Sequence record: NC_027399.1 | Reading direction: 5' to 3' (one strand) | DNA length: 64,000 nucleotides | Part shown: one piece after another, positions 1-64,000 of the stretch | How the letters are laid out: each line of letters begins with the position of its first letter | How positions within the stretch are numbered: the first letter of the stretch is position 1 | The notes under the pieces: model-generated | Told to the model about the DNA's origin: nothing | Seen by the model: only the letters and a program-made list of their open reading frames with translations | The model's database searches: none | Translations under genes and position numbers: made by a program

Positions 1-74
1 TTAAAAATGTTTTTTTACTTACCATGTTAGTACATCGATAAAACAACCATGATATTTAATATAAAGGAAACGTT

Positions 75-329
75 ATGAAACAAATTTTTAAAACCATCTG
101 GAATTCACTGTTTAGTAAAAATACCAGTAATGTCGTTGATACTGTTGATAGTACTGTTACTACAAATACACAAAGTACATACATTCCGGTATATAGCGAT
201 GAAAATCCATTCTATACAGAAGAAGAGAAGAAACAATGGATTGAGGATGAGATTCGTTTACGCAAAGAAGAAGCAGAGCGTATGAAACTTGAAAAAAGTA
301 ATAAGAAATGCAACCAATGCAACAAATAA
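75..329 (+). CDS. hypothetical protein
   Basis: ORF with AAGGA SD; no recognised motif. Confidence 0.75.
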   Translation: MKQIFKTIWNSLFSKNTSNVVDTVDSTVTTNTQSTYIPVYSDENPFYTEEEKKQWIEDEIRLRKEEAERMKLEKSNKKCNQCNK

Positions 330-490
330 ATTCTGACTATTATTACAGTACTGTACAGTACAATATGTATTTAAGTTCTTTTATGAATTTAAAAACGAGT
401 TCAATAGACAAAGACGTATATGAAAGTATATTGGGTTGTTTGAATCATAGTATTCATAAATTATATAAATTAAAAGGTACGTTGGGATGA
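308..490 (+). CDS. hypothetical protein (C-terminal LYxLxGxL shared with 487 and 1416)
   Basis: Ends LYKLKGTLG; overlaps next gene by ATGA; start uncertain. Confidence 0.6.
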   Translation: MQPMQQINSDYYYSTVQYNMYLSSFMNLKTSSIDKDVYESILGCLNHSIHKLYKLKGTLG

Positions 491-669
491 TTGATAATTA
501 CCAACAAATAAAAATACTATCTGAGTATTATAAAATTGATACTAATTATATAGTACGGATGCCTGTAGAGTTGGATGAATCTTTACATAAGTGGAGATAT
601 TTTTCAGTATTAAATAATTTGAATTTTGTCATTAATAGTTTATATGAATTACAAGGTAAATTACCATGA
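487..669 (+). CDS. hypothetical protein (LYxLQGKLP C-terminus)
   Basis: Ends LYELQGKLP; ATGA coupling. Confidence 0.65.
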   Translation: MIDNYQQIKILSEYYKIDTNYIVRMPVELDESLHKWRYFSVLNNLNFVINSLYELQGKLP

Positions 670-1013
670 AATATAAACGATGTGATGATGGATATCTGGC
701 TGCCAGGTATTACAGTAAATTTGTATCTACAACTAACAAAGATGATTTGTTATTGCTTATGTTAGTAGGTACAATTAAACAAGAAATGGCGGTGGAAAGA
801 TATATCAACACGTTAATACATAAAATGGTACTGAAACACAGGCTGGTTAAGATCAGGACTATTGGTGGTTATGAACCTTATAAATTTGGTGTATTTTATC
901 TTGACAATACTAAATTAGCTGCTGCTGATTCTATTATAATTTGTGAGTCCATTGAAAAAGCAGTTCAGTACTGTAAAAATAATAATTATAGATTGATTGG
1001 TACAGAGGTATGA
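666..1013 (+). CDS. family C (LGTxxQ) protein with C-terminal extension
   Basis: LLMLVGTIKQEMAVERYINTLIHKM. Confidence 0.65.
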   Translation: MKYKRCDDGYLAARYYSKFVSTTNKDDLLLLMLVGTIKQEMAVERYINTLIHKMVLKHRLVKIRTIGGYEPYKFGVFYLDNTKLAAADSIIICESIEKAVQYCKNNNYRLIGTEV

Positions 1014-1016
1014 ATT

Positions 1017-1259
1017 ATGATGAGTTTAAAATTTTATGACCATTTACCAAAAAGTATTAAATTCAGTAATATACAATATTATACATTAGAAGATTGGGAA
1101 ATGCATTATCGAAAGATACTCGGTTTTTCTTTGGGATTTGAAGAAACTGAGTACCAGGAAATACATTATAATTATTATATTGAAATATTAAAATGTATGA
1201 TACATAAAGATTATGAAATTTTAATTTCCAGATATATAGTGACGAGTAAAAATGGATAA
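1017..1259 (+). CDS. divergent family C protein
   Basis: ETEYQEIHYNYYIEIL resembles GTxYQxxxxxYIxxL. Confidence 0.55.
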   Translation: MMSLKFYDHLPKSIKFSNIQYYTLEDWEMHYRKILGFSLGFEETEYQEIHYNYYIEILKCMIHKDYEILISRYIVTSKNG

Positions 1260-1419
1260 AGAAACAAAGAAGAAATTAACTGAACTTATTGAAGCATCTA
1301 TTAATGCTGAGGGTGCTTTCTTTGAACACTACGATAAGTATGATAAAAAAGGACGAGTATTGTGGGAGAAGCGTAATAGTACCAGGAAGGAGTTGGATGA
1401 ATTTATTTCTAAATTGTGA
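1252..1419 (+). CDS. small hypothetical protein (55 aa, not in ORF track)
   Basis: Manual translation MDKETKKKLTELIEAS...DEFISKL; GTGA overlap with next ORF. Confidence 0.6.
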   Translation: MDKETKKKLTELIEASINAEGAFFEHYDKYDKKGRVLWEKRNSTRKELDEFISKL

Positions 1420-1634
1420 GGAAATTAGTGAATAGTCCAAATGGTCGTGCATCTATATCCCAACTATATTTGTATAATCTTAAATTATCTTATATTATAA
1501 AATCAATAAAAACTCAAAATAACTTCATTGGTTTGCCTAATTATGTAAGAGAAATGGAGATAGATTCATTTGTTAAGGATATGATAGAAATATATAAAAT
1601 TCAAGGTAAGTTACCACCGTTTGATGCGTTGTAA
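1416..1634 (+). CDS. hypothetical protein (IYKIQGKLP C-terminus)
   Basis: Similar C-terminus to 308 and 487. Confidence 0.6.
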   Translation: MRKLVNSPNGRASISQLYLYNLKLSYIIKSIKTQNNFIGLPNYVREMEIDSFVKDMIEIYKIQGKLPPFDAL

Positions 1635-1675
1635 TACTATTCACTTCATCCCCACCGTGTGTCTTTTTTAAACAC

Positions 1676-4077: not shown

Positions 4078-4472
4078 TGAACAATAAAGAGTCCCTTTTT
4101 CTTGCTAAAAAGATATACAACACAGCACAACTTTTTTATAATTCAAGTTTCAACTGTACTGGATTTAAGAGAAGTTTTGTGGGGCTGGATTATGAATACA
4201 AATTTTCCAATTTAATTGTTTTCAGTACTGAAAATACATATGGCTGTTTCTTTTCTTTTAAAAAAAATATTATAATTTTTGATAATGAATTCGCCGGTAT
4301 AATTGAATGTGAATACGAAGATGGAACACGTAATTATCTTTCCCGTATAATGAATTTACATCAACAGTGCCAACCTGTGAATACAAAGGATAATATGTCA
4401 GTACTGACAATTTTTTCGTACTTAGCCCAGATGAAGTGTCAACCATTCTATATGGATTTACGCATAATTTAG
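4077..4472 (+). CDS. family A-related protein (paralog of 3061)
   Basis: See 3061; ends KCQPFYMDLRII. Confidence 0.75.
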   Translation: MNNKESLFLAKKIYNTAQLFYNSSFNCTGFKRSFVGLDYEYKFSNLIVFSTENTYGCFFSFKKNIIIFDNEFAGIIECEYEDGTRNYLSRIMNLHQQCQPVNTKDNMSVLTIFSYLAQMKCQPFYMDLRII

Positions 4473-16639: not shown

Positions 16640-17120
16640 TTTAGTTGATTTTGCTTCAGTATCAAAATTCTCAGAAAATTTAATTAGAATTCATAAAGCA
16701 TTTACTGATGGTTTCTTTTTGAAAGTACCGAACTTTTGTACTAAACTGGAAGAAGTACAAGGTGAGTATGAATATTCGGTTATTCAACCAATAAAATGTT
16801 CACAAATGTATACCAGTTTAACTGAAGAATATATTATTGATATTAATGATATATATTTTATATCTTTCAATCCTGATTCAGTACTTGAGATATACATTAA
16901 TGCCGTTAGATCAAAAGTACTTAGTACAAAAGATGTAAATTCATTTGATATATCAGAAGAGGGTTACTTCCAGGGAAGCACGATTTATGAACCAGCAATG
17001 TTAAATTCTATTTTCATTGCATCTGTTCTAAATCGAAGTGATTGTGATAAATTTTATTTTGATTTAGATTATTATGATCTTTGTGTTGAGTATATGGAAA
17101 AATATAATTATGTTCAATGA
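16629..17120 (+). CDS. family A protein
   Basis: DISEEGYFQGSTIY...FYFDL. Confidence 0.8.
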   Translation: MIGNLVDFASVSKFSENLIRIHKAFTDGFFLKVPNFCTKLEEVQGEYEYSVIQPIKCSQMYTSLTEEYIIDINDIYFISFNPDSVLEIYINAVRSKVLSTKDVNSFDISEEGYFQGSTIYEPAMLNSIFIASVLNRSDCDKFYFDLDYYDLCVEYMEKYNYVQ

Positions 17121-17601
17121 ACGTATCAGAACTGCACAAGAAATTATTCAAATTATAGTAGCAATAGAATCTACTGATAAAAAGTATGATGATTTCAAAA
17201 GTAATTTTACAGAAAAATATGTTCAGGACTCGGATTTTATTCAGTACTATATTAAAGGTGAAGAAAATGTATTCTATGCAAATGAAACATATATTTGTGA
17301 TTATGACAATTCTTCTAGATTTAATTACATCTGTTTTATTCCAAAATCAAATATTATAGTATTTCGCCTTTGTGATGAATTCGAAACAATATATGAGTAT
17401 GAACTTTTTAAAGATTTTTCAGAAGAACAGGCATTTCAGTACAGTACATTGTACAATTATGATATAATTGAAATGATGATTATGTTCTGGTATTTTAACC
17501 AGATCTACAATGGCTCTTTTTATATTAATATGAATTTATTTGAAAAAGCCAAAAAAATATATGAGAGATATCATGACTTCGAATACAAATCCATTAATTG
17601 A
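17110..17601 (+). CDS. family A protein
   Basis: DFSEEQAFQYSTLYN. Confidence 0.8.
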   Translation: MFNERIRTAQEIIQIIVAIESTDKKYDDFKSNFTEKYVQDSDFIQYYIKGEENVFYANETYICDYDNSSRFNYICFIPKSNIIVFRLCDEFETIYEYELFKDFSEEQAFQYSTLYNYDIIEMMIMFWYFNQIYNGSFYINMNLFEKAKKIYERYHDFEYKSIN

Positions 17602-30159: not shown

Positions 30160-30189
30160 TTAACAAAAAAAACATAAAGGAATATAATA

Positions 30190-30477: not shown

Positions 30478-30486
30478 TATATTAAA

Positions 30487-30517: not shown

Positions 30518-30549
30518 AATTTAAAACAAAAATAAGGTTTAGTAGATAT

Positions 30550-34378: not shown

Positions 34379-34387
34379 GGAATAAAA

Positions 34388-36176: not shown

Positions 36177-36445
36177 TGAACAAACAATTATTATACTGTA
36201 AAGTGGTTTATTACTTGACTAATTCAGTACTGAATATGAATAACACACATTTTAACTATTCACTATGTATTAGAAGTATTTTAGATAACATAGAAGATGA
36301 ACTAAATGTGTTATATACTGGAAAAACATTCACAAAAAACAATATCCGACACAAATGTAATGGTATTGTTATAACATATGGGCGTATATTTGCTTTATAC
36401 GGTATACGTTACACTTGCTATTTTCATAGGGCTAAATTTAAATGA
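36176..36445 (+). CDS. family B protein
   Basis: IEDELNVLYTGKTF. Confidence 0.65.
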   Translation: MNKQLLYCKVVYYLTNSVLNMNNTHFNYSLCIRSILDNIEDELNVLYTGKTFTKNNIRHKCNGIVITYGRIFALYGIRYTCYFHRAKFK

Positions 36446-37059: not shown

Positions 37060-37262
37060 AAATAGTTTTAGAATTTGCATTTATTATTTTTGGTTTCATT
37101 TGGTTCACTGCTATTTCAATTTTTGCTGGATATCTCATTATTAAACCGGATATGTTGATTTTCTACTGGATTTTGACTTTAATTGCATTCATCAGTGTTG
37201 TCTATTTGTCTTATAAACTGGTATATCTATATGCAGATGAAATCAAAAAATATAACACTTAG
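37056..37262 (+). CDS. small membrane protein (2 TM)
   Basis: Two hydrophobic segments. Confidence 0.7.
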   Translation: MKIVLEFAFIIFGFIWFTAISIFAGYLIIKPDMLIFYWILTLIAFISVVYLSYKLVYLYADEIKKYNT

Positions 37263-37295
37263 TTGGTTTTATGTTGAAAAGATTTAAAATCGATA

Positions 37296-37325
37296 TTGAA
37301 TAAACATTTCTCCTTGTGATATAAT
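37296..37325 (+). promoter_or_regulatory. sigma70-type promoter
   Basis: TTGAAT-18bp-TATAAT with TG extension. Confidence 0.65.
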
Positions 37326-37369
37326 ACTATATGTAAAAGGATTTTACATAAGCACAAGGAGAGTCAAAG

Positions 37370-38098
37370 ATGATAGATAATTTAGCATTTGCATCCGAAA
37401 TGGCTAATCAGTTGAACATGAGTAATTTTCAGAGTCTTACACCAGTGATGGCGGAATATGCTGTTGCTCATGCCACCTGTGGTGAACAAGTTGGATCAGC
37501 AAATTTATTAGCTGATGTATTCAGTACTGTACAAAGTACCCAATACAGTGTTAAAATGTATAGGGATAAGTTTGTACAGTTGTATATGCTTGATGTAATA
37601 AAAGAAGAACCAGAATGGACTGATTTTATTATTGAACGTAGGATTAGTGGTGTTTCTAATCCAGATAAAGATGCAGTACAAGTATTTGATGAAATACTTC
37701 AAGATGTATATAGTAATGAACAAAAAAGTCTAAATCAATACAATGTACGTTCTACCAAGACAGTGCTCGTGGGATTTGATGAAGATGAAGAATATTACTA
37801 TTTTCGTTGTACTGAAGTAGATTTTAAATACGAAACTCCCAGTACAGTTAAAGTTAAAGAATTTACTGAAAAGAGTAAAAACTTCAAAAAACATTCTTCT
37901 AATATTAGTAATATAGTTGGTTATAATAAAGATGGTATTGACATATATCAATGGGTACACCCAAATAACTCAACTTATACCAGATGTTTAAAGAAACGTT
38001 ATAATTTAAAACAAGAAGAATCATTTTATTTTAAGATAAAGAAGCATTCCTATCAACGACCTGATGAATCAGTGTTACTTGGTATGATTTACTTCTGA
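37370..38098 (+). CDS. hypothetical protein (monocistronic unit)
   Basis: AAGGAG SD; own promoter and terminator. Confidence 0.8.
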   Translation: MIDNLAFASEMANQLNMSNFQSLTPVMAEYAVAHATCGEQVGSANLLADVFSTVQSTQYSVKMYRDKFVQLYMLDVIKEEPEWTDFIIERRISGVSNPDKDAVQVFDEILQDVYSNEQKSLNQYNVRSTKTVLVGFDEDEEYYYFRCTEVDFKYETPSTVKVKEFTEKSKNFKKHSSNISNIVGYNKDGIDIYQWVHPNNSTYTRCLKKRYNLKQEESFYFKIKKHSYQRPDESVLLGMIYF

Positions 38099-38106
38099 TT
38101 TTAGTC

Positions 38107-38139
38107 GTCCAGTACAATATAAGTACTGGACATTTTTTT
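38107..38139 (+). terminator. intrinsic terminator
   Basis: GTCCAGTAC-AATATAA-GTACTGGAC-ATTTTTTT. Confidence 0.75.
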
Positions 38140-38149
38140 AAGGTAAAAA

Positions 38150-38428
38150 ATGAATATATTACAAAAAGTTAATCTATTTGGAAAAGCGTATACAAATGCT
38201 TTTTATGGTATTGATAAACGTTATGAATATGCTAATTTTTTAAATAGAGAAATTGAATTTAGTGGAATGAATAGGTTATTGTCTGGTAAACGTGTAACTA
38301 TTGTTTTTAATGGTTATCAGGGATATATTAATCAAATTCGTCATCTAGATGAGAAAATTTTTGCATACGTTTATACTAATAATGGAAATTTATTGATTAA
38401 TTTATCTTTTTTGGAATTGATTGAATGA
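38150..38428 (+). CDS. family B protein
   Basis: MNRLLSGKRVTI. Confidence 0.65.
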   Translation: MNILQKVNLFGKAYTNAFYGIDKRYEYANFLNREIEFSGMNRLLSGKRVTIVFNGYQGYINQIRHLDEKIFAYVYTNNGNLLINLSFLELIE

Positions 38429-38709
38429 AATTAATAGACCAAGTTATTCTTTATAAGAAAGTATTTGATTATATGGAAGATTTTCTTGATGGTACACATT
38501 ATGAATGTTGCATTTATGTTACATGGAAAAAGAATGTAATGGAAATAGAAAAAGCTACCATTTCTAAAATAGTGCGTATAAAAAGCCTTGATACTATTGG
38601 TACTATTATTGAACTTAATATAGGAAGATATTTTGCATTTTTTGGTGTAAAAGTACCTGAAAACGATTTTGCTCTTATAATTTCATTAGATGATATTGAG
38701 TTTCTTTGA
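38425..38709 (+). CDS. probable family B protein
   Basis: Same size and beta-rich C-terminus; ends ISLDDIEFL. Confidence 0.55.
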   Translation: MKLIDQVILYKKVFDYMEDFLDGTHYECCIYVTWKKNVMEIEKATISKIVRIKSLDTIGTIIELNIGRYFAFFGVKVPENDFALIISLDDIEFL

Positions 38710-38738
38710 GTTTTATCTATTTGGTAATATAAAATATT

Positions 38739-39050
38739 ATGGATAAATTACACAAAGCAGTATTATTTTTAAAAGCATATAGCTATGAGTACTTACAAAG
38801 TCATGGAAAATGGAATGGTAGTTATAAGGATTTATATTCATCTGTTTTTCTTAATGAAGTAAATCTTGTGATATCAGAAGTACAAAAATTATATGAAAGA
38901 AAACTTGTGCATACGAGATTTGGTATTGGAATTATTATTAGTATATTTTGCTTCACATACGGTTCCTTTTTAGTCGCAATAGAAACAATAGTAGAAGGCA
39001 AACCACAAACAATAGTATTAGAATTAAGTGAGATATATCTGGATGAATGA
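38739..39050 (+). CDS. family B protein
   Basis: VQKLYERKLVHT. Confidence 0.65.
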   Translation: MDKLHKAVLFLKAYSYEYLQSHGKWNGSYKDLYSSVFLNEVNLVISEVQKLYERKLVHTRFGIGIIISIFCFTYGSFLVAIETIVEGKPQTIVLELSEIYLDE

Positions 39051-39315
39051 ACATTTTAATAGAATACAATTAATCACCCAACTTCTACAAATGGTTGATG
39101 ACACATTTGATGAATTAAAAAATAATCTTATGAATAAGAAAATCAAATGTAAGGTATATATGAATGATGGTGATTATTTCGATATGCGAGAAGTTGAAGT
39201 AACTGGAATTGTTACTAATATTACTTTATATGAATATGATCTAACTATTACAGTGAAAATCGACGAAGGTCGTGAATATTACGTTTGTAATCAACATATT
39301 GAGGTGGTTGAATGA
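39043..39315 (+). CDS. family B protein
   Basis: LKNNLMNKKIKC. Confidence 0.65.
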   Translation: MNEHFNRIQLITQLLQMVDDTFDELKNNLMNKKIKCKVYMNDGDYFDMREVEVTGIVTNITLYEYDLTITVKIDEGREYYVCNQHIEVVE

Positions 39316-40457
39316 GTTTAGTAGAAATCTATAATGATTTAATGAATTTAGTACAAAATAATGAAGCATTTGAATATAAAGATCAGCGTTCAATTGGTGG
39401 TGGTTTGTATAGAATCTTTTCTTATCGAATGGCCTCATATACTGATTTCTGTGAACCTAATGCCAAAGAAACACGAGGTTCAATGTGGGAAATCAATGAA
39501 GATGGTACTATGATTCGTTGTGCAGCCCGTACTATGAATAAATTTTTTAACGCATATGAAAACCCATTCACAATGTTTGATAAAAATATGCTTAGTACTG
39601 AAATTGAAGTGGCGATGGATAAACGAGACGGTTCTATTATCAGTACTTTCAAGGATAATGACGGAATTATTCGTTGTAAATCTCACACTTCTCTATCTTC
39701 AGAACACGCAATTAATAGTAATGCTATCATGCGTCCTGGTTCTAGTTTATATCAATACGTAGAAGAAGCTGAACTTCAACAATATACCGTGAACCTCGAA
39801 TATACTTCACCTGAATATCGTATTGTATTGCCATATCAGAGCGAGAAACTGACTGTATTGAACGTTCGTCATCGAATCACTGGTGAACTACTGTGTGGTG
39901 AAAAACTGCGTCAGAAGTTTCCTATGCTCGCTATGCGTAGCACTAATATGATAAATGGTCAGAACATTGCAAGTAATTTTCCAATGCGTACTACAGTACT
40001 TGAAACGGTGGAAGCAGTAAAAGGAATGCGAGACATTGAAGGATTTGTGGCAGTACTGAAAGATGGCACAATGTTTAAAATTAAAACAGATTGGTACTGT
40101 GCTTTGCATTTCAATAAGGATAGTATTAATGTTGATTCTAGACTTTACGAATCAGTGCTACAAGGTGCAAGTGATGATTTAAGGCAAATGTTCTCTAATG
40201 ATCAGTATTGTCTTGATAAGATTAAAAGGATGGAAGATTTAGTATTCAGTACTTATAATTCTTTTGAAAAATTTGTTAATGATTTTTACAATGAATTTAA
40301 ACATTTAGAACGCAAAGAATATGCACTAAAAGTACAGAAACTTCTACCAAAAGAATTAAATCATCAGGGTTATGCTTTCTCTTTGTATAACAATAAACCG
40401 TTTGATTTAAAGGAAAACATGATCAAATACAGCAAAGAAGTATTAAAAGATTTCTAA
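39312..40457 (+). CDS. rnlA: RNA ligase 1 (T4 RnlA-like)
   Basis: RIFSY, ETRG, KFFN, motif I KRDGSII, EYTSPEYRIV, EGFV, FKIKTDWY. Confidence 0.9.
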   Translation: MSLVEIYNDLMNLVQNNEAFEYKDQRSIGGGLYRIFSYRMASYTDFCEPNAKETRGSMWEINEDGTMIRCAARTMNKFFNAYENPFTMFDKNMLSTEIEVAMDKRDGSIISTFKDNDGIIRCKSHTSLSSEHAINSNAIMRPGSSLYQYVEEAELQQYTVNLEYTSPEYRIVLPYQSEKLTVLNVRHRITGELLCGEKLRQKFPMLAMRSTNMINGQNIASNFPMRTTVLETVEAVKGMRDIEGFVAVLKDGTMFKIKTDWYCALHFNKDSINVDSRLYESVLQGASDDLRQMFSNDQYCLDKIKRMEDLVFSTYNSFEKFVNDFYNEFKHLERKEYALKVQKLLPKELNHQGYAFSLYNNKPFDLKENMIKYSKEVLKDF

Positions 40458-40469
40458 TAAGGACACCAA

Positions 40470-40643
40470 ATGAAGAAAAGGAATTCGTGGAGTACTCCTG
40501 AAGAATATAGGAAGATTCAGTGTTATTTTGATACAATACACAAAGAAAAATCCAGTTCAGGAGTACGAAAAAACAGAAATAAAATTAATACTAAAAAGAA
40601 AGAACGTATATATTCTTTAGAACGTCATACAAGAGAAGCTTAA
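40470..40643 (+). CDS. small basic protein (57 aa, not in ORF track)
   Basis: Manual: MKKRNSWSTPEEY...HTREA; AAGGA SD. Confidence 0.6.
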   Translation: MKKRNSWSTPEEYRKIQCYFDTIHKEKSSSGVRKNRNKINTKKKERIYSLERHTREA

Positions 40644-40656
40644 ACGGGAGATTATT

Positions 40657-40869
40657 ATGAAAGTACAAATTCAGCACAGTATTGTTCAAGACATGTCAGT
40701 GATTAAATTTAACAATCTTCATGATTTTTTTAGATGCATTGACTTTCTCGATAATTCATGTTTAGAATATGATATGATAAAATACAGTTCAGTTCTTGAT
40801 ACTGCCAGTATCAGAGTGAATGAATTGGTACTACATAAATTTAGCAAACGTTTCGGGATTGGGAAATGA
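40657..40869 (+). CDS. hypothetical protein
   Basis: GGGAG SD. Confidence 0.7.
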   Translation: MKVQIQHSIVQDMSVIKFNNLHDFFRCIDFLDNSCLEYDMIKYSSVLDTASIRVNELVLHKFSKRFGIGK

Positions 40870-41132
40870 TTATGTATGAAAAATTTATATCAACTAAAGA
40901 AATGCTTCATAGGTTGATTGACGACACTGACAAAGAAATTATAAGGTATTACACTGGAAAAAAAGTACAAATTTCTGCTGAACTCCTTGAGGAACTCGAA
41001 TTGGAATCAGAGGATGATATTGTATGGACTATATATGCAGTCACTGTATTCGATGATTGCCTATTTTTTGATGTAGAGCACGGTGATGATGACTTACAAG
41101 ATTTAGAAATAGATGATCTTATATTTCTTTGA
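40866..41132 (+). CDS. family B protein
   Basis: IIRYYTGKKVQI. Confidence 0.65.
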   Translation: MIMYEKFISTKEMLHRLIDDTDKEIIRYYTGKKVQISAELLEELELESEDDIVWTIYAVTVFDDCLFFDVEHGDDDLQDLEIDDLIFL

Positions 41133-41140
41133 GAATAAAA

Positions 41141-41407
41141 ATGAATACAGAACAAGCTATTAGTACTATTGAAAATTTAAATAACACTTTAGTAATTCTT
41201 GAAAAAATTAAGTTAGATGTTGAATATCAAGTACAAAGTTTATTTTTGAATAAGAAAGCATTATTTAAGGATGGCACAGAAGGATATATTGTCGAGTTGT
41301 TTTCTGAAAATGTAAATCTACCTTATGATTTTCAATTTCTTGTTCGTTCAGAAGGTGGATACCTAGATTATATATATGAGGTAAAAGATTTTGTGCAATT
41401 CATCTAA
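41141..41407 (+). CDS. family B protein
   Basis: VQSLFLNKKALF. Confidence 0.65.
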   Translation: MNTEQAISTIENLNNTLVILEKIKLDVEYQVQSLFLNKKALFKDGTEGYIVELFSENVNLPYDFQFLVRSEGGYLDYIYEVKDFVQFI

Positions 41408-41633
41408 AATAATTAAGCAGTACGAACAATACGTAACTATGCTTGAAACCATGAATGCGGAATTAGAAGTTTCTGCATTTAATTCTGTACATAGATACTT
41501 TATAAATCGTCCAGTGTTATATAAAAACAATGAATATAAAATTCAAAATGTATTCAGAGATGAAGAAAGTACCATAATTTTCCTACTGTATAATAATATA
41601 TATGTGGATTATACTGAAGTAACGTTTATTTAA
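41391..41633 (+). CDS. family B protein
   Basis: VHRYFINRPVLY. Confidence 0.65.
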   Translation: MCNSSKIIKQYEQYVTMLETMNAELEVSAFNSVHRYFINRPVLYKNNEYKIQNVFRDEESTIIFLLYNNIYVDYTEVTFI

Positions 41634-41644
41634 AGGACATAATA

Positions 41645-42589
41645 ATGCCAACAATCACATTAACAGTTGGACTTCCCGGATGTGGCAAGACTACATGGGC
41701 TGTTGAAGAAGTTCGAAGATCTAAAAGTAAAACAGTAAACATCAACCGTGATGATATGCGAGAAAGCATGGCTGGTTCTCATGAGAATTATAAGTTCAAA
41801 GATGATAATGAGAAGTACATAGACGCTATGCAAATTGCAGCAGCAGATACAGCAGCAAAGAATAAGTGGAATATTATTATTTCAGATACCAACCTAAAGT
41901 TATCTATCCGAAAGAAATGGAAAGATTGGGCTAAAGCCAATGGCTATGATTACAAAGAAAAGAATTTCTTTGATGACTTTGTAGCAAAAAGTACTTCAGG
42001 TGCAGATGTTCATCAGTACTTTAAAATTAAAGAATTTGTTAAACAATGCAAATACTATAATTTACTTCGATATAAATCAGTACCGGAATCGGTAATTGAT
42101 ACAATGGCAGATTCTTATTTGTATAGTACTATGCCAGTTCCTTCTATTCAGAAAGATTCGATGTACGATTTTAGTACTGAATATATCATTGTTGATATTG
42201 ATGGTACTTTAGCACATAGGGGAAATCGCAACCCATATGATGAAAGTACTGTACTGGAAGATACACCAGATCTTGAAGTTATTCGTTCAGTACTTGCTGA
42301 AGTGAACCATCATAAACGAAAGGTTATTATCATGAGTGGTCGTCATGAAACTTGTGCAAAAGACACTCGTTTGTGGCTTCATGAAAATGGAGTTCCATTT
42401 GAATATCTTTTTATGCGTTCAGAAAATGATAATCGCCCTGATGATGTGGTAAAATATGAATTGTACATGAAACATGTTGCACCATATTATAATGTTGTTA
42501 AAGTTTATGATGACCGACAACAAGTGTGTACGATGTGGCGTAAATTACTGAAATTGAAAGTTTTTCAAGTTGATTTTGGTAATTTTTGA
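41645..42589 (+). CDS. pseT: polynucleotide 5'-kinase / 3'-phosphatase (T4 PseT-like)
   Basis: Walker A GLPGCGKTT, NRDDMR, HAD DIDGT, SGR, YDDR. Confidence 0.92.
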   Translation: MPTITLTVGLPGCGKTTWAVEEVRRSKSKTVNINRDDMRESMAGSHENYKFKDDNEKYIDAMQIAAADTAAKNKWNIIISDTNLKLSIRKKWKDWAKANGYDYKEKNFFDDFVAKSTSGADVHQYFKIKEFVKQCKYYNLLRYKSVPESVIDTMADSYLYSTMPVPSIQKDSMYDFSTEYIIVDIDGTLAHRGNRNPYDESTVLEDTPDLEVIRSVLAEVNHHKRKVIIMSGRHETCAKDTRLWLHENGVPFEYLFMRSENDNRPDDVVKYELYMKHVAPYYNVVKVYDDRQQVCTMWRKLLKLKVFQVDFGNF

Positions 42590-51370: not shown

Positions 51371-52195
51371 ATGAAAGTAACAGGAAAGGGAAATCAGAAG
51401 GATGACCTATTTCATATAGATAAGTTTTTAAATACTGGTAAATTTTTACCAGGAACAATATTTTCTCGTTCAACTACTAGACAAAAGAACAATAAAGGTG
51501 TAATATCATATCCATATTGGAATTATAAATGCCCCAAATGTTCACATGATGAATTCGTTGAACATGGTTTATGTTCTGGTGTATTCGAAGGTGAATGTCA
51601 AAAACTAAAATTAGGAAAACGTAATTGTAGATGTGCTCCGACATATAGGTGGACACAAGAACAACGAGAATATCAAATACAAAAAGAAATCGATGAACGT
51701 GGTCTAGAAAATTATTTTATTGGATGGGTTGATCCTGAAGGATATAAAAATAATGGAAGTAAAATTATAATTGGATGTATAAATTCAGATGATGATGGTA
51801 CCCAACATAAAAGTTATACTATAGCAATAAATGATTTTCTCCATGGACATAAAGGTTGTGCTAAATGTGCCGGTCAAACACAAAAACATGCATATATAAA
51901 TGTTGTATATAATGAAAATAAACCAGTAGCTATAAAATTTGGAATTGCAAATGCACCACACATAAGGATTGAATTTCAAAATAGTAAAAATTTATATAAG
52001 ATGGTTCAAACGCACATTTACAAATTTTTCAGTACTGAACAATGTAAAGATGCTGAACGATATTGTAAATCAATTTATAAAAATGTTTTAACAAAAGAAC
52101 AACTATTTGATGGTTATACTGAAACCACACTATTGGAAAATATAGAAAATATTATTCAAATCTATGAAAAATATGGTGGAATCAGAACAAAATAA
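51371..52195 (+). mobile_element. putative free-standing homing endonuclease (Cys-rich N-terminus, GIY-YIG-like C-terminus)
   Basis: CPKC, RNCRC, GCAKC; AYI..IKFGIA...RI..Q...CKDAE; lacks the local GTAC enrichment (2 sites in 825 bp). Confidence 0.6.
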
Positions 52196-55271: not shown

Positions 55272-55731
55272 AACATGGTTAAATATTGCTAAAGCGGTTG
55301 CCGAGGAAAGTAAATGTATTTCACACAAAGTTGGTGCAGTAATTGTAAAGAATAACAGGATTCTCAGTACTGGGTATAATGGTACAAGTTCTGGAGCAGT
55401 TAATTGTTGTGATGCGAATAGTCATTTAATTCATAATAATGAATTTCAAAATTGGGTATCAGATGAAGCTAAACATGAACATCATGAGTGGAGTAATATT
55501 CATGAAATTCACGCAGAAATGAATGCTTTATTATATAGCTCTCCACAAGAACGACAGGGTGCAACTCTTTATAGTACAATGCAACCCTGCTATACCTGTT
55601 CTAAATTAATTGCAGGGAGTGGTATTACTAATGTAATTTATGAAAAAGAATACCCACGTACACCACCCGAAGCAATTGAAGTTTTAAAAGATGCTGGTAT
55701 TACAGTTAATAAATTATCAGATTTGGAATAA
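55261..55731 (+). CDS. cd: dCMP deaminase
   Basis: KVGAVIV, GYNG, HAEMNAL, PCYTC. Confidence 0.93.
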   Translation: MKHKTWLNIAKAVAEESKCISHKVGAVIVKNNRILSTGYNGTSSGAVNCCDANSHLIHNNEFQNWVSDEAKHEHHEWSNIHEIHAEMNALLYSSPQERQGATLYSTMQPCYTCSKLIAGSGITNVIYEKEYPRTPPEAIEVLKDAGITVNKLSDLE

Positions 55732-57258: not shown

Positions 57259-58323
57259 ATGAAAGAAAAAGTTTATGTATATATTGGACGTTTCCAAATT
57301 CCACATATTGGTCATGAAGAAGTCCTCAAACATGCGATCAAAATTGCAGATCGTGTTATCATTCAGGTCGGTTCAAGTGAACTGGCTCGTGATCCAAAAA
57401 ATCCATTCACGTTTGAAGAACGTAAGTCAGTACTAGAAGAAATTACAAAACGTGTAGCTCAAGATGAATGGAATAAAGGTCGAACTGTTAAAATCGATAT
57501 TATGCCATTACATGATTATGTATATGATAATAATGCATGGCTAAAAGAAGTACAGGATAATGTTAAAACATGTACTTCAAGTAATGATATTACTATTACC
57601 GGTTGTCGTAAAAATGGTGATACTAGTACTGAATATCTTAACTATTTTCCTCAATGGAAAAATGACTTCATTAACGAAGTACAAAGTAATGCAAAGGGTA
57701 CTATTAGTAGTACTGAACTACGCGAAGCTTTCTTTGTCTCTGGTAAAGTTCCAACTGAATTTGTTTCAAAAGAAACAACAGAATTTCTAGAAAATTTTGT
57801 CAGTACTAAACCGGATGTATTCGATAATCTTATTAAAGAATATGAATTCATTAATCGTTATATTGAACAAATGAAAGAAGCACTACCTTATGATATTCCA
57901 TTTTTAACAGCAGATAACATCGTCGTCAGTTGTGGTCACGTTCTTCTTATTCGTAGAAGAACATATCCAGGAAAAGGATTATTAGCTATGCCGGGTGGAT
58001 ATTTTCAATGTTGGGATGATAAAGACCAGATTGATACTGCAATTCGTGAATTAAAAGAAGAAACTAAAATCGATGTACCTGAAAAAGTGCTTCGTGGTAA
58101 TATTGTTAGTGCAACAGACTTTACTGACATGAATAGAAGTCTTCGCTGGCGAATTCTAACTAAAGCTGTTCATATTCAATTACCTGACGTCACTCTACCT
58201 AAAGTTAAAGGAAGTGATGATGCAGAAAAAGCTCAGTGGATTCCACTAAGCGATGTAGAAAAATATCGTGATCAGTTCTTTGAGGACCATTATTCTATTT
58301 TGGCTTCAGTACTGAAACTATAA
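57259..58323 (+). CDS. nadM: bifunctional NMN adenylyltransferase / Nudix hydrolase (NadM-Nudix, NatV-like)
   Basis: IGRFQIPHIGH, KNPFTFEER, SSTELR; Nudix PGG..AIRELKEET, DDAEKAQW. Confidence 0.93.
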   Translation: MKEKVYVYIGRFQIPHIGHEEVLKHAIKIADRVIIQVGSSELARDPKNPFTFEERKSVLEEITKRVAQDEWNKGRTVKIDIMPLHDYVYDNNAWLKEVQDNVKTCTSSNDITITGCRKNGDTSTEYLNYFPQWKNDFINEVQSNAKGTISSTELREAFFVSGKVPTEFVSKETTEFLENFVSTKPDVFDNLIKEYEFINRYIEQMKEALPYDIPFLTADNIVVSCGHVLLIRRRTYPGKGLLAMPGGYFQCWDDKDQIDTAIRELKEETKIDVPEKVLRGNIVSATDFTDMNRSLRWRILTKAVHIQLPDVTLPKVKGSDDAEKAQWIPLSDVEKYRDQFFEDHYSILASVLKL

Positions 58324-60456: not shown

Positions 60457-61194
60457 ATGATTAGTACTAAATTCATTAAAAAAGCTGGTGATAAAAGATT
60501 ACTAATCATTTCTGGAAATGGATTGTCAATGGATAGTGGTTTTGACTTATATGACATTCCTGATAATTTTCAGATAAATGATGTATGTAATATTGCCAGT
60601 TTAGGTACAAAATATCACGTAGTTCATTCTTATTATAATACTCTTAGAGTTAAATTAAAAGATATTGAACCAAACGAAATGCATTACTATATTAAATCAT
60701 TACAAGATGAGTATGGTGATAACTTTTTACACATGACCAGTAATGTAGATGATTTATATACAAGAATTGGTGGCACTGAATTAAAATTACATGGTAATAT
60801 TAAAGAGGTTATAGAAAACTACACCGCTGATGGTTCTGAAATAGAAATAAAAGAATTAGGTTATGAACCATATATTCCATGTAGTGGTATTTTTTCTAAA
60901 CCAGGTGTTACATTAATTGGTGAGTTCCATAGTTATTTTTATGGATATAAAATCCCAATTTATGAAGAACGAAATGAAATACTAAAATCATTAAATGAAA
61001 ATGATACTGTAGTAGTAATTGGAAGTTCTGATTCAGTACTGAAATGGAGCCATTTAATAAATGAGAAATGTTACACAGTACTAATCAATATAAGAAAAAA
61101 TGAAAACGATCATCGTTTCAATGAACGAATTTATAAATCTTGTTCCAAATCTGTATTAGATTTATCTGGAATAATTTCAAAAAGGATGGTATAG
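60457..61194 (+). CDS. Sir2/sirtuin-like NAD-dependent enzyme (divergent)
   Basis: SGNGLSMDSG, SNVDDL, LHG, KPGVTLIGE, VIGSS. Confidence 0.8.
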   Translation: MISTKFIKKAGDKRLLIISGNGLSMDSGFDLYDIPDNFQINDVCNIASLGTKYHVVHSYYNTLRVKLKDIEPNEMHYYIKSLQDEYGDNFLHMTSNVDDLYTRIGGTELKLHGNIKEVIENYTADGSEIEIKELGYEPYIPCSGIFSKPGVTLIGEFHSYFYGYKIPIYEERNEILKSLNENDTVVVIGSSDSVLKWSHLINEKCYTVLINIRKNENDHRFNERIYKSCSKSVLDLSGIISKRMV

Positions 61195-61748: not shown

Positions 61749-62080
61749 TAATGGGATACCAGTTATTTTTAGATGATATTCGTTACCCATCAAAATATTA
61801 TAGTACTGAAATGGTACTATGTAGATCTTATGATGAAGCTGTCAAATATGTAGAAGAACATGGAATTCCAGAATTTATCAGTTTTGACCATGACCTTGGA
61901 GATACTTCTGATAATGAAAAAACTGGTTATTCATTTGCTAAATTTTTGATTGATTATATGATTGATAATGGCATCAGTAATGAATTCAAATATAATATTC
62001 ATAGCTCAAATCCAGTAGGTGCAGATAATATCGATTCTTATCTAAAAGCTGGTTTTAAATATCTAAGAGAAAATATGTAA
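61745..62080 (+). CDS. cyclic-phosphate-processing receiver-like domain protein
   Basis: LFLDDIRYP, RSYDEA, ISFDHDLG, KTGY, HSSNPVG. Confidence 0.75.
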   Translation: MIMGYQLFLDDIRYPSKYYSTEMVLCRSYDEAVKYVEEHGIPEFISFDHDLGDTSDNEKTGYSFAKFLIDYMIDNGISNEFKYNIHSSNPVGADNIDSYLKAGFKYLRENM

Positions 62081-62397
62081 TGAAGATTGGTAATCATATT
62101 TTTGCATGTTTTATTAGTATATGTATCTGTTCGGTTGTTGCTGGATTGTGGTATAATTCAATGAGGTACGAAAAACACAATATTAGATATAATTCAGTTA
62201 AAGTTGTTGGTATTGGTCAATGTTCTAATAAAAGTTCGAGTACCGAGTGTTCTTTTTGGTACGAAGATGGAAATTCTACCCAATTTGCAATTTCAGATAA
62301 TCCAGTTTCAATTGGTCAAATTGTTTATCAAATGTGCTGGACAGAAAAGGCTCGTGGTGATAGATGTTATGTAAATTACCAAACGAGTAAGCAGTAA
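62080..62397 (+). CDS. membrane-anchored Cys-containing protein
   Basis: N-terminal TM; several Cys. Confidence 0.7.
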   Translation: MKIGNHIFACFISICICSVVAGLWYNSMRYEKHNIRYNSVKVVGIGQCSNKSSSTECSFWYEDGNSTQFAISDNPVSIGQIVYQMCWTEKARGDRCYVNYQTSKQ

Positions 62398-62430
62398 AAA
62401 AGTTGTATTTTAGCAGTTCTAAATACATAT

Positions 62431-62475
62431 GAGAACAACATAATATTCTCCCCAACTAAGATAAGGAATATCTTA
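62431..62475 (+). promoter_or_regulatory. two-hairpin leader with SD in loop (phoH)
   Basis: GAGAA-CAACATAATA-TTCTC ... TAAGATA-AGGAA-TATCTTA(TG). Confidence 0.5.
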
Positions 62476-63914
62476 TGAAAAAATATACTATTGACACTAA
62501 CGTAGTACTTTCTGATCCAAATGCAATCACTGCGTTTGATGGTACATCTGTTATTCTTCCATTTAAAGTACTAGAAGAACTAGATTCTATTAAAAGTCGC
62601 AATGTTGACGTATCTCGTGATGCACGTTTTGCAATCCGAAATATTGATGCAATTCTAGCTGATGCAACTTATGAAGAGATTAGAAATACTGGTGTTGATA
62701 TTTCAAAAGTACATACGAATATGAGTGCTTCCAGTAAATTATTTGTAATTACCGATGAAGAAGCAGAAGCTTTAATTCGTACACAAGATAAAGAAGAAAA
62801 ATTAGTCACTCTTCTAAAAAGTACAGTTCCTGATGATAAAATCATTTTAGTAGCACTAGCAACTGATTCAGTACTAGTTACAAAAGATATCAATATGCGT
62901 CTAAAAGCACTATCTTATGGTGTTGAGGTTCAAGATTATCGTCATGATGTAGTACTAGAAGATAGTGATCTTATTCATGTCGGTCAACATCATCTTGACA
63001 TTGATTTTTGGGAAATGTTTAAAGATATTCCTGATGCAGAAATTAAATCCAATCAAATTGGTAGAAAATTGTATCACTATATCAGTACTGAACTATTAAA
63101 AGATTCGTTACCAACAAATATGTATATTGGTGATTATTTGTATGATAATTCTGATGTATTGTTTGTATATGATGGTATTGTTGAGCTTGATGATTCAGAA
63201 GGTAATGCAATTGAAGGTGAGTTTTTTGTATTTCAAGATGTAGGACAATCGGTTGCTTTACGTGCTAAAGTTTGGGATATTAAATCAAAAAATATCCAAC
63301 AATCATTAGCAATTAATAGTATTCTCGATCCTGACGTACATCTTACTGTACTTCTTGGTTCTGCTGGTACTGGTAAAACACTAATTACAATTGCAAGTGC
63401 ACTTGAATTAGTACTAGAGAAGAAAAAATATTCTCGTATTATTTTCTCAAAAACTCAAGATTCACAGTTTGAAGATATTGGTTTCCTACCAGGATCAGAA
63501 AGTGAAAAAGTAATTCCTTTCTGTGGTGCAGCAATTGATGCATTAGAGTTTTTACATCGTGATGACCGCGATCCACAAGGTAGTATTGAAGAAATTATGA
63601 AACGTAATGTTATTCAATTTAAAGCATTGAACTTCGTTCGTGGTCGTAGTTTCACTGATACAATTCTTGTTATCGACGAATTCCAAAATATTTCACCCGC
63701 ACAAGCGAAGACAATCTTGACACGTGCTGGACAAAACTGTAAAGTAATCATTATGGGAAACCTATCACAAATTGATAATAAATTTATTAGTGCAGTGAAT
63801 AGTGGTTTAACATATGTTACTGAAAAATTTAAAGATTGGTCCGGTTGTCGTATCATCGAGTTAGAAGGTGTTGTGCGTTCACCATTAGCCGAATTTGCTG
63901 AGAAAAATATGTAA
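62475..63914 (+). CDS. phoH: PIN-PhoH family protein
   Basis: PIN DTNVVL, VLEELD, DDKI, LVTKD; Walker A GSAGTGKT, RGRS, IDEFQN, GNLSQID. Confidence 0.93.
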   Translation: MKKYTIDTNVVLSDPNAITAFDGTSVILPFKVLEELDSIKSRNVDVSRDARFAIRNIDAILADATYEEIRNTGVDISKVHTNMSASSKLFVITDEEAEALIRTQDKEEKLVTLLKSTVPDDKIILVALATDSVLVTKDINMRLKALSYGVEVQDYRHDVVLEDSDLIHVGQHHLDIDFWEMFKDIPDAEIKSNQIGRKLYHYISTELLKDSLPTNMYIGDYLYDNSDVLFVYDGIVELDDSEGNAIEGEFFVFQDVGQSVALRAKVWDIKSKNIQQSLAINSILDPDVHLTVLLGSAGTGKTLITIASALELVLEKKKYSRIIFSKTQDSQFEDIGFLPGSESEKVIPFCGAAIDALEFLHRDDRDPQGSIEEIMKRNVIQFKALNFVRGRSFTDTILVIDEFQNISPAQAKTILTRAGQNCKVIIMGNLSQIDNKFISAVNSGLTYVTEKFKDWSGCRIIELEGVVRSPLAEFAEKNM

Positions 63915-63920
63915 TAATAT

Positions 63921-63955
63921 TTTCGGTACTGAACAACACTCAGTACCGAAATTTA
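63921..63955 (+). terminator. terminator-like hairpin
   Basis: 12-bp stem TTTCGGTACTGA / TCAGTACCGAAA. Confidence 0.7.
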
Positions 63956-63974
63956 AAATAATTAAAAAAAACAT

Positions 63975-64000
63975 TTGACATATCAATCGTTGTATCCTAT
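63975..64000 (+). promoter_or_regulatory. probable sigma70 promoter truncated by window end
   Basis: TTGACA-17bp-TAT... Confidence 0.5.

Follow-up and report, generated by a model that had tools for sequence, protein, structure and literature searches.

The Klebsiella jumbo phage K64-1 (RaK2-like) carries a palindrome with the core AGTACT far more often than expected, and the same excess was found in its enterobacterial relatives. We propose tentatively, with confidence well below even, that this palindrome is a tag kept by selection and recognised by a factor that is specific to the clade, encoded by the phage and acts on double-stranded DNA. The DNA analysed was as follows.

1 to 64000, no strand: the window, that is, the whole stretch of 64,000 nucleotides, equal to positions 248001-312000 of the K64-1 record
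1 to 64000: the field of sites, with 492 GTAC, 161 AGTACT and 29 CAGTACTG, with Poisson spacing, in every frame and also in non-coding DNA

These counts compare with zero-order expectations of 167 GTAC and 21 AGTACT, giving one GTAC per 130 bp and excesses of 2.9-fold and 7.7-fold, respectively. The spacing of GTAC was Poisson-like (CV 0.97), and the site density was similar in coding and non-coding DNA (1 per 129 bp vs 1 per 144 bp). The earlier note had relied on hand counts in two patches, 12 GTAC and 5 AGTACT at 33301-34080 and 9 GTAC and 4 AGTACT at 62761-63480, which proved exact on recount; its eyeballed expectations were also correct (zero-order, 1 GTAC per about 383 bp and 1 AGTACT per about 3.1 kb). 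The roughly fivefold and more than tenfold excesses that it derived were real in kind, but the patches are somewhat dense and the values for the whole window are those given above.

Codon, dipeptide or dinucleotide usage, or the purging of other palindromes, could in principle yield the excess as a side effect; this explanation was tested and not supported, and we consider it scarcely credible. Composition does explain part of the raw GTAC excess: the second-order Markov ratio was 1.69, which still ranked GTAC first among palindromic 4-mers, against a zero-order ratio of 2.94, and 300 GTAC are already expected under the synonymous null. However, a large residual excess was found under three codon-aware nulls, in every frame and in non-coding DNA, and CAGTACTG stands at 81-fold in the whole genome. 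When synonymous codons were shuffled within genes, z reached 12 for GTAC, 16 for AGTACT (3.1-fold) and 19 for CAGTAC (4.5-fold); codon permutation gave 10.6-fold for CAGTAC, and a synonymous shuffle with dinucleotides kept left AGTACT at 2.3-fold (z = 15). The z values over the synonymous-codon, codon-permutation and dinucleotide-preserving shuffles ranged from 10 to 34. With protein and codon usage kept, AGTACT was 2.8-3.6-fold in excess in each of the three frames, and conserved enzyme genes carried the word at 2-4.5 times expectation, so the placement of sites in all frames and in conserved enzymes by the earlier note was upheld, as was the excess itself once codon and dipeptide usage were controlled. 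Codon choice was context-dependent, the share of TAC being 45% after G vs 18-25% elsewhere.

In the K64-1 genome (346.6 kb), AGTACT occurred 940 times against 118 expected, and the enrichment rose steeply as the palindrome was extended. In particular, CAGTACTG, the top 8-mer palindrome, was found 242 times against 3.0 expected, TCAGTACTGA 71 times against 0.35, and the long consensus palindrome TTCAGTACTGAA 33 times against 0.04 (about 800-fold). Enrichment fell with mismatches to CAGTACTG from 81-fold (none) to 7.4-fold (one), 1.8-fold (two) and 1.15-fold (three), and a mismatch cost most in the GTAC core (2-2.7-fold left) and least at the outer positions (10-13-fold left). Enrichment was still gained from positions out to +/-6, and no conservation was seen around the window sites beyond +/-6. 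GTAC lacking the A flank was enriched only about 1.3-1.7-fold. The palindrome named as the unit, GTAC or AGTACT with longer forms, was therefore accepted in part: AGTACT and the longer palindromes are enriched but GTAC alone is weak, and the enriched unit has an AGTACT core whose outer positions are graded. In its behaviour the motif resembles a binding-energy matrix rather than a fixed enzyme site. The flanks are nearly independent, with 29 CAGTACTG in the window vs 24.5 predicted from half-site frequencies, a result that a strand-specific 8-mer, TTCAGTAC, recognised on either strand would explain just as well. An interspersed repeat of the REP or MITE type was rejected, as the sites shared no extended flanks and 28 of the 29 CAGTACTG sites in the window lay in-frame within genes. 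The full consensus occurs six times in the window.

4221 to 4232, no strand: TTCAGTACTGAA, full 12-bp palindrome, within a coding region
36223 to 36234, no strand: TTCAGTACTGAA, full 12-bp palindrome, sequence match
36898 to 36909, no strand: TTCAGTACTGAA, full 12-bp palindrome, sequence match
52028 to 52039, no strand: TTCAGTACTGAA, full 12-bp palindrome, sequence match
58305 to 58316, no strand: TTCAGTACTGAA, full 12-bp palindrome, sequence match
61032 to 61043, no strand: TTCAGTACTGAA, full 12-bp palindrome, sequence match

The avoidance of short palindromes by phages is textbook knowledge, and K64-1 is an extreme case: GCGC (0 in 346 kb) and about 17 palindromic hexamers are missing altogether. 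Restriction-site avoidance holds for GCGC and about 20 other hexamers but is reversed for AGTACT, which outnumbers every other palindromic hexamer in the genome. Most hexamers containing GTAC escape purging, including GGTACC (the KpnI site; 43 vs 25 expected), and CGTACG is wholly purged (0 vs 25 expected). The description of a HIP-like palindrome in a palindrome-avoiding phage therefore stands, since the over-representation is genome-wide and acts at the DNA level while other palindromes are purged. An 8- to 800-fold excess of one palindrome in a palindrome-purged genome implies a strong and specific function. The contrast with host DNA was equally marked: AGTACT was under-represented in Enterobacterales DNA (0.36-fold; 1.66 Mb, 80 species), its density per 10 kb being about 27 in the phage vs 0.75 in hosts, and it ranked first of 2080 hexamers by phage-to-host density ratio (34-fold). 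GCGC, at about 92 per 10 kb in hosts, was absent from every motif-rich phage sampled.

To follow the word across relatives, we compared K64-1 with seven other enterobacterial RaK2-like phages, represented by genome pieces. AGTACT was 6-21-fold in excess in the sampled pieces of RaK2, Turkey3, GAP32, Kaldavass, Munch, Serratia phage BF and a 378-kb uncultivated viral contig. The excess was absent from the related phages PA5oct and Atu_ph07, from the T4-like Klebsiella phage KP182 and from E. coli; PA5oct, a Pseudomonas relative, had 0 AGTACT in 25 kb. A general enrichment in the host, which would have spoken against the earlier note, was thus not seen in the sampled host-type genomes or in an unrelated Klebsiella phage. 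The sharing of the excess by enterobacterial relatives suggests a phage function that reads AGTACT, and its limitation to one phage clade indicates a phage-specific cause; to this extent the idea of a phage-encoded process behind the sites is retained, although its repair or gene-conversion version is unsupported. Individual sites were not clearly more conserved than other 4-mers. Orthologues of K64-1 and Turkey3 had 10 AGTACT positions in common, of 38 and 36 sites; positional conservation between genera was 34% vs a median of 26%; the GTAC loss rate was 0.046 vs 0.054 overall (K64-1, RaK2 and Muenster); and gains about equalled losses (10 and 7). The outer-flank preference also varied by lineage, being C..G in K64-1 and A..T in BF and Munch. 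Such site turnover and flank drift between lineages would be expected if a reader and its sites co-evolved. No published description of an iterated AGTACT palindrome in a phage was found in the literature.

The word also has a fixed place in early promoters. We found 23 sigma-70-like promoters at 173-243 kb of the K64-1 record (21 within 215-243 kb), all outside the window, with GTAC at one or both elements. Their pattern is AGTAC-TTGACA-N9-10-CAGTACTG(G)-TATAAT, in which the word immediately precedes both the -35 and the -10 on the 5' side; variable spacer bases differ among these promoters and the word is constant. The arrangement recurs in Turkey3 and in the 378-kb contig. Inverted repeats with GTAC arms flank the -35 on both sides in relatives, but many early promoters of equal geometry there have GGGG/CCCC arms in place of the GTAC arms, so the placement may reflect a need for an inverted repeat and not for this word. 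The strict pattern had no match in the window, and the in-gene sites there had no consistent -35 or -10 nearby. One site resembling the early promoters lies within the dCMP deaminase gene, of which it is only a possible internal promoter. The earlier note had also placed the word in terminator stems, and the stems of both hairpins that it named do contain it.

38107 to 38139, plus strand: terminator-like hairpin, 9-bp arms with CCAGTAC / GTACTGG, then a T run, read directly from the sequence
63921 to 63951, plus strand: hairpin 3' of a PhoH-like gene, 12-bp arms with GGTACTGA / TCAGTACC
55365 to 55380, plus strand: CAGTACTG directly 5' of GGTATAAT, extended -10-like arrangement resembling the early promoters, within the dCMP deaminase gene

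We infer that a protein reads the word and that the phage encodes it, and the effects ascribed to its binding are likewise inferred. The factor would read double-stranded DNA symmetrically and would most likely be a dimeric DNA-binding protein, although it may instead be a sequence-specific enzyme. Weak selection at thousands of singly dispensable sites would hold the density high, with TTCAGTACTGAA as the putative optimum in K64-1. The bound reader would sit on early sigma-70-type promoters, most likely shutting them off, and the word, whose density in the phage is about 36 times that in enterobacterial chromosomes, would mark phage DNA as self. The about 2500 extra sites demand a very abundant protein or a second purpose, which counts against such a reader. 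One of the options raised earlier, a packaging protein, loses weight in view of the fixed terminal repeats predicted for a relative. Additionally, AGTACT excess and GCGC absence occurred together in every clade member sampled. It is conceivable, though rather unlikely in our estimate, that RaK2-like enterobacterial jumbo phages with ordinary bases separate their own from host DNA by two sequence tags. AGTACT would then be the positive tag, recognised by a phage factor with a protective, organising or regulatory role on phage DNA, and GCGC the negative tag, at which a phage nuclease would attack and destroy host DNA.

Other explanations have to be weighed against a DNA-binding reader. The word may be the target of a phage DNA-modifying enzyme (Dam-family gp580, Mom-family gp190 or an unrecognised enzyme) whose marks serve as a chemical self-mark or shield, density being selected since more marks give more protection or discrimination; we regard this as doubtful.

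32787 to 33305, plus strand: gp580, Dam-family (PF05869) N6-adenine DNA methyltransferase, candidate modifier only

K64-1 encodes both this PF05869 enzyme and the Mom-family enzyme as candidate modifiers, and the Dam-family gene is conserved with its neighbouring gene in Munch. The nesting of GTAC in AGTACT in CAGTACTG parallels that of HIP1 (GATC in CGATCG in GCGATCGC), and most GTAC-containing hexamers, GGTACC included, are unpurged while about 20 palindromic hexamers are eliminated. The reported resistance of RaK2 DNA to many restriction enzymes (PMC3622015) also agrees with modification. However, graded specificity out to 12 bp is unusual for a methyltransferase, the outer-flank preference is not equal between lineages, and protection would account for tolerance of sites, not for an 8-80-fold excess. 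The purging of CGTACG indicates that GTAC is apparently not generally shielded. Characterised PF05869 members are GATC enzymes, and the sole cytosine-5 methyltransferase of K64-1 is DNMT3-like, with closest solved relatives that methylate CpG, in line with reported CpG methylation. The same enzyme bears on neutral molecular drive, in which functionless sites arise by biased mismatch repair of the very-short-patch type, biased gene conversion in co-infection or a context-specific polymerase bias, an explanation that we think unlikely. Poisson spacing, equal coding and non-coding density, unconserved single sites and the 10 gains vs 7 losses all agree with drive, as do some receptor-binding genes with little or no excess (gp668, 0.79-fold; gp674, 0.83-fold), which may be recently exchanged and would then suggest slow amelioration. 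Repair drive should, however, deplete its source word, and no one-mismatch neighbour of GTAC was strongly depleted in the K64-1 genome (GTAT/ATAC 1.02; GTAA/TTAC 0.86), for which reason the very-short-patch type was rejected. GTAC lacks CpG and the C5 enzyme is DNMT3-like, leaving no deamination substrate; methyl-directed repair or gene conversion, as first suggested, thus finds no support. Core mismatches are also far rarer than flank mismatches, which simple decay of perfect sites would not yield, and the word holds a fixed promoter register across several genera.

An Enterobacterales host protein could read the sites, such as the nucleoid-occlusion factor SlmA, which the phage would recruit or titrate. 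The trait is confined to Enterobacterales-infecting relatives and absent from Pseudomonas and Agrobacterium relatives, and the SlmA site GTGAGTACTCAC shares the AGTACT core (PMC3020112). SlmA requires G, T, purine, A, G at half-site positions 1-5 (PMC3020112), whereas the phage consensus half-site is T, T, C, A, G. Among symmetric flanks, GAGTACTC is the least frequent (8 vs 242 for CAGTACTG), SlmA-type half-sites make up 1.5% of AGTAC sites, under the composition expectation, and only 2 SlmA-like sites were found in 346 kb. SlmA as the reader was refuted on these grounds, and since the excess is missing from a T4-like phage that infects the same host, we hold any host reader to be very improbable. 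Action of the word in RNA or single-stranded DNA, as hairpins (terminators or processing sites) or as the strand-specific signal TTCAGTAC, appears just as improbable. The word is self-complementary, so any two copies can pair; it occupies both arms of the hairpins at 38107 and 63921, GTAC-armed inverted repeats surround the -35 in relatives, and sense-strand CAGTAC exceeded GTACTG against the codon null in the window (4.5-fold vs 2.5-fold). Nevertheless, site pairs showed no excess at hairpin distances of 7-30 nt (about 4.0 per distance vs 3.8 expected), the strand asymmetry flips in other regions with equal transcription direction, and the excess is equal in non-coding DNA.

HIP1 (GCGATCGC) is a cyanobacterial, highly iterated 8-bp palindrome present in all frames and non-coding DNA of related genomes and linked to methyltransferases that recognise its nested sites. 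We found the phage word to be similar: an 8-bp palindrome at roughly 1 per 1-1.5 kb, in genome-wide excess with its nested shorter palindromes, in all frames and non-coding DNA, and common to related genomes with positions that turn over. It differs in sequence, in being carried by a virulent phage and not a cell, and in being built into promoters; moreover, no cognate methyltransferase is evident among the DNMT3-like C5, Dam-family and Mom-family enzymes of K64-1, and no neighbour word is depleted. Like Chi, the uptake sequences USS/DUS and FtsK-orienting sequences, which a DNA-processing machine reads as marking self DNA, AGTACT is a short word far above chance, self-dense and with many weakly selected sites, but those words are asymmetric, often oriented and have known readers, whereas AGTACT is a palindrome with a hypothetical one. 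SPO1 TF1 and phi29 p6 are phage genome-wide DNA-binding proteins that also silence early promoters, and our proposal follows the same logic, with an abundant protein of the phage preferring phage DNA and acting on early promoters; TF1 discriminates via a modified base and p6 via DNA shape, however, and neither is tied to an over-represented word as the hypothetical reader would be. The SlmA site of E. coli is a 12-bp palindrome with the identical core in the same host order, but the outer positions that SlmA needs are disfavoured in the phage. The core words are also the recognition sites of RsaI/CviQI (GTAC), ScaI (AGTACT) and TatI (WGTACW), restriction targets that phages normally avoid, as PA5oct does, and that here include the most abundant palindromic hexamer.

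The implied function would be conserved over seven or more lineages of phages, from a group that serves in phage-therapy work on Klebsiella and E. coli. In metagenomes the word can be used as a sharp marker of the clade, and unusual digestion is predicted, RsaI and ScaI sites being plentiful and HhaI sites missing. The existence of iterated palindromes such as HIP1 has long called for an explanation, and these phages, with a small genome, relatives that grow on laboratory E. coli K-12 and a word that is a direct bait for its putative reader protein, are a tractable system in which to seek one.

A 12-kb segment of the window (30000-42000) was 100% identical to Klebsiella phage K64-1 (AB897757.1 / NC_027399.1), a RaK2-like jumbo myovirus (Alcyoneusvirus) of 346,602 bp; this identity places the window at 248001-312000 of the record, plus strand. 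The window has a G+C content of 29%, and its plus strand carries nearly all genes. They comprise many small genes without known function together with genes for a Dam-family methyltransferase, an RNA ligase, a polynucleotide kinase, a DNA ligase, ClpP, a dCMP deaminase and NAD salvage, and a PhoH-like gene. Two single N bases are present in the sequence, at 3510 and 8877.

The window contained 492 GTAC sites, where 167 were expected under a zero-order and 292 under a second-order Markov model, and 161 AGTACT sites, where 21 were expected. An earlier note had counted both words by hand in two patches, and our recount reproduced its counts and expected frequencies exactly. The two patches had approximately twice the average site density, and site spacing was otherwise Poisson (CV 0.97). 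GTAC occurred once per 129 bp in coding and once per 144 bp in non-coding sequence of the window. In the entire K64-1 genome, all 35 of the 10-kb bins were enriched (range 1.7x to 3.9x), with the highest values in the early-gene region (220-258 kb) and the lowest in the structural genes (70-90 kb) and the tail-fibre region (317-337 kb). The enrichment was also present in the homing-endonuclease genes, and AGTACT was the commonest palindromic hexamer in the phage, above the all-A/T ones. We also observed that some tail-fibre/depolymerase genes of the K64-1 genome piece L002 (24593-40233; record 321.6-337.2 kb) showed little or no GTAC excess (gp668, 0.79x; gp674, 0.83x; gp671, 1.4x), which would fit a recent exchange of receptor-binding modules.

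Three codon-aware nulls were run on the ORF-derived genes, which make up 90% of the window. When synonymous codons were shuffled within each gene, leaving protein, dipeptides and codon usage unchanged, the residual excess was 1.49x for GTAC (z = 12), 3.1x for AGTACT (z = 16), 4.5x for CAGTAC (z = 19) and 9x for CAGTACTG (z = 15). The corresponding values under a codon-permutation null were 2.4x, 7x, 10.6x and 41x, and a z-score of 10-15 remained after synonymous swaps that preserved every dinucleotide. The AGTACT excess was nearly equal in all three frames (2.8, 3.3 and 3.6x), and the choice of tyrosine codon depended on context, with TAC at 45% after G versus 18-25% elsewhere. The shuffle residue, the excess in every frame and the context-dependent codon choice together indicate that the pressure acts on the DNA and not on protein or codon usage. 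The earlier note had proposed a control for codon and dipeptide usage, and the excess persisted under all three nulls. A codon, dipeptide or dinucleotide artefact was rejected on the large excess left by the three shuffles, and a compositional artefact ranks as the least likely of the rival explanations.

In counts from both strands of the entire K64-1 genome, the enrichment depended strongly on the flanks. The earlier note had taken GTAC/AGTACT as the unit; AGTACT, with its two A flanks, was confirmed at 7.9x, whereas GTAC with one A flank reached 2.5-3.1x and GTAC without an A flank was weak, at only about 1.3-1.7x. Addition of C..G outside AGTACT to give CAGTACTG yielded 242 copies versus 3.0 expected (81x), and the longer forms TCAGTACTGA and TTCAGTACTGAA occurred 71 and 33 times (0.35 and 0.04 expected). 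With zero to three mismatches, the enrichment dropped smoothly (81x, 7.4x, 1.8x and 1.15x), core mismatches being the most costly, and the contributions of the left and right flanks were almost independent. With its graded and symmetric profile over 12 bp, the motif resembles a binding-energy matrix more closely than it does the fixed 4-6-bp site of an enzyme. Two further forms were observed in the window: GTACAGTAC, an overlapping tandem of two sites 5 bp apart, occurred 13 times versus about 3.8 expected, and TTCAGTACAGTA occurred 8 times.

The check on relatives proposed in the earlier note revealed that the excess was common to seven sampled enterobacterial RaK2-like genomes. AGTACT was enriched 6-21x in the sampled pieces of RaK2, Escherichia phage Turkey3, Cronobacter phage GAP32, Erwinia phage Kaldavass, Salmonella phage Munch, Serratia phage BF and a 378-kb uncultivated viral contig. 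The core was constant among these relatives and the outer preference varied, AAGTACTT being favoured in BF and Munch. A search of a viral-contig collection for further relatives matched none besides RaK2 and the 378-kb contig. About 90 RaK2-like records had a capsid identity of at least 60%, and relatives that infect E. coli K-12 include Sharanji and 121Q. Between orthologous K64-1 and Turkey3 genes, which are 62% identical at the nucleotide level, the numbers of sites were similar (GTAC, 111 vs 104; AGTACT, 38 vs 36), and the positions coincided for only 38 GTAC, only 10 AGTACT and none of the CAGTACTG sites (5 and 7). Polarised among K64-1, RaK2 and Muenster, gains (10) approximated losses (7) and the loss rate was ordinary, with small counts and no true outgroup, since the three phages are roughly equidistant (410, 415 and 460 differences). 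What is maintained is the density of sites, not particular sites.

The AGTACT excess was absent from the sampled sequence of two more distant relatives, PA5oct (Pseudomonas) and Atu_ph07 (Agrobacterium); in PA5oct 80001-105000, AGTACT occurred 0 times versus 8.6 expected, a deviation in the direction opposite to that of the enterobacterial clade. Hosts and an unrelated phage, another comparison suggested in the earlier note, did not share the enrichment: GTAC was at 0.65x in the T4-like Klebsiella phage KP182 and at 0.71x in 50 kb of E. coli K-12, and 1.66 Mb from 80 Enterobacterales species, including K. pneumoniae, gave 0.60x for GTAC and 0.36x for AGTACT. The density of AGTACT per 10 kb was 0.75 in Enterobacterales and 27 in the phage, and its phage-to-host ratio (approximately 34-36-fold, varying with the host sample) was the highest among 2080 strand-symmetrised hexamers. 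A symmetric AGTACT-centred word is, on these data, under a pressure that resembles selection, acts at the level of DNA and is specific to the clade.

Dense sigma-70-type early promoters with very small ORFs downstream were found mainly at 215-243 kb of the record (15000-43000 of genome piece L007), just upstream of the window. One AGTACT word lay immediately 5' of the -35 element and another immediately 5' of the -10 element, the overall form being AGTAC-TTGACA, 9-10 variable bases and CAGTACTG(G)-TATAAT or CATAAT; examples of these early promoters lie at record 226855 and 234258. In a strict scan, GTAC was present at one or both positions in 23 promoters, of which 21 lay within 215-243 kb and none in the window. 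Turkey3 and the 378-kb contig had an equivalent arrangement, but many of their early promoters carried GGGG/CCCC arms with the geometry unchanged; judged from this equal geometry, the shared feature may be an inverted repeat bracketing the -35 element. In the early regions of relatives (L018, L020 and L021), the promoters contained a 7-9-bp inverted repeat, of either GTAC type or AAAAGGGG/CCCCTTTT type. Its arms enclose the -35 hexamer together with some 8 further bases and stop 1-2 bases before the -10; these promoters may be overlapping terminator-promoter modules. The region of Muenster homologous to 215-243 kb is part of the terminal repeat predicted for that phage. A near-consensus Fur-box-like sequence, GAGAATGATAATCATT, was present twice in L007 (approximately 25466 and 26327; record 225466 and 226327), each copy immediately 5' of ACAGTACTG, and a third, looser copy lay near record 225260.

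The in-gene GTACTGAA and CAGTACTG sites of the window lay at variable distances from gene starts and had no consistent -10 or -35 element in their vicinity, and a promoter explanation was rejected for them on these grounds. The word was present in both arms of each of two terminator hairpins listed in the earlier note. Promoters and terminators account for only a small minority of the approximately 2500 sites.

K64-1 is purged of other palindromes to an extreme degree, a background against which the AGTACT excess stands out all the more. GCGC occurred 0 times in the 346,602 bp of K64-1 versus about 220 expected per strand, and the sequence sampled from the seven motif-rich relatives named above likewise had none. 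GCGC counts were normal in the PA5oct, Atu_ph07 and KP182 pieces, and its density in hosts was about 92 per 10 kb. Possible causes of this loss are a GCGC-specific nuclease encoded by the phage or a universal threat from hosts. Seventeen palindromic hexamers were wholly absent from K64-1, including CTTAAG (0 vs 118 expected), CTGCAG, CAGCTG, GAGCTC, GCATGC, GCTAGC, TCCGGA, AGGCCT, CGATCG, CGTACG, TGCGCA and AGCGCT, and several others occurred 1-4 times; GAATTC, GATATC and GGTACC were not avoided. The E. coli Chi octamer GCTGGTGG was found 16 times in the K64-1 genome (both strands) versus about 1.3 expected, and CTGGTG-type words were among the top hexamers of the structural genes in K64-1 and Turkey3.

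As the most likely cause, we tentatively propose a clade-specific, probably phage-encoded, dimeric reader of double-stranded DNA. This putative protein would recognise AGTACT-centred sites, which would tag phage DNA; with sites placed on early promoters, its action would resemble that of TF1 of SPO1 and p6 of phi29, both of which act on their own phage genomes, as the K64-1 reader would. The early-region protein gp430 (L007 30004-30504, 166 aa) contains an H-NS N-terminal oligomerisation domain and could be an H-NS mimic, an H-NS antagonist or a nucleoid protein. Its homologues were detected only in jumbo relatives infecting Klebsiella, Escherichia and Salmonella; they do not span the whole motif-rich clade, and gp430 was rejected as the reader. 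The idea of a dense packaging tag, raised in the earlier note, survives only in weakened form given the predicted terminal repeat of Muenster and the 22-kb terminal repeat reported for CBB.

The main rival, which we consider rather unlikely, is a modification enzyme for which the word is a chemical self-mark. The candidates encoded by K64-1 are gp580, assigned to the Dam family (PF05869), and gp190, of the Mom family. The complete purge of CGTACG argues against a general shielding of GTAC. The Mom-type target is (C/G)A(G/C)N(C/T); it was rejected because CAGTA mismatches the last position and relatives preferring AAGTACTT lack CAG. Over its entire length, the C5 DNA methyltransferase gp237 (16664-17557 of genome piece L006) aligned with the catalytic domains of animal DNMT3A and DNMT3B (E = 2e-22), a much closer match than bacterial M.HaeIII or M.HhaI. 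Its DNMT3-like character fits the report of CpG methylation in RaK2 (PMC3622015); GTAC contains no CpG, and this C5 methyltransferase was rejected as the cause. A function-less drive, for example through repair, is less likely than modification. No one-mismatch neighbour word was depleted in the K64-1 genome (GTAT/ATAC 1.02), which led us to reject very-short-patch-type repair and gives no support to the methyl-directed repair suggested in the earlier note. Lower still ranks a host reader. The SlmA site has the AGTACT core in common but requires G, T and purine at positions 1-3 (PMC3020112), whereas the phage prefers T, T and C, with G..C as the rarest symmetric flank; with only 2 SlmA-like sites in the K64-1 genome, SlmA was rejected. 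A role at the RNA level is less likely than a host reader: site pairs at short, hairpin distances showed no excess in the window apart from the overlap form GTACAGTAC, and the hairpin-pair explanation was likewise rejected.

The kind of feature is already known, HIP1 being likewise an iterated palindrome. That a clade of virulent phages carries one, the sequence of the word and the promoter link appear to be new; the AGTACT excess and the GCGC absence were unmentioned in the full texts searched, including the RaK2, CBB and Sharanji papers. As a speculation, the joint occurrence of the AGTACT excess and the complete loss of GCGC would point to a two-tag discrimination between self and non-self in phages without hypermodified bases.
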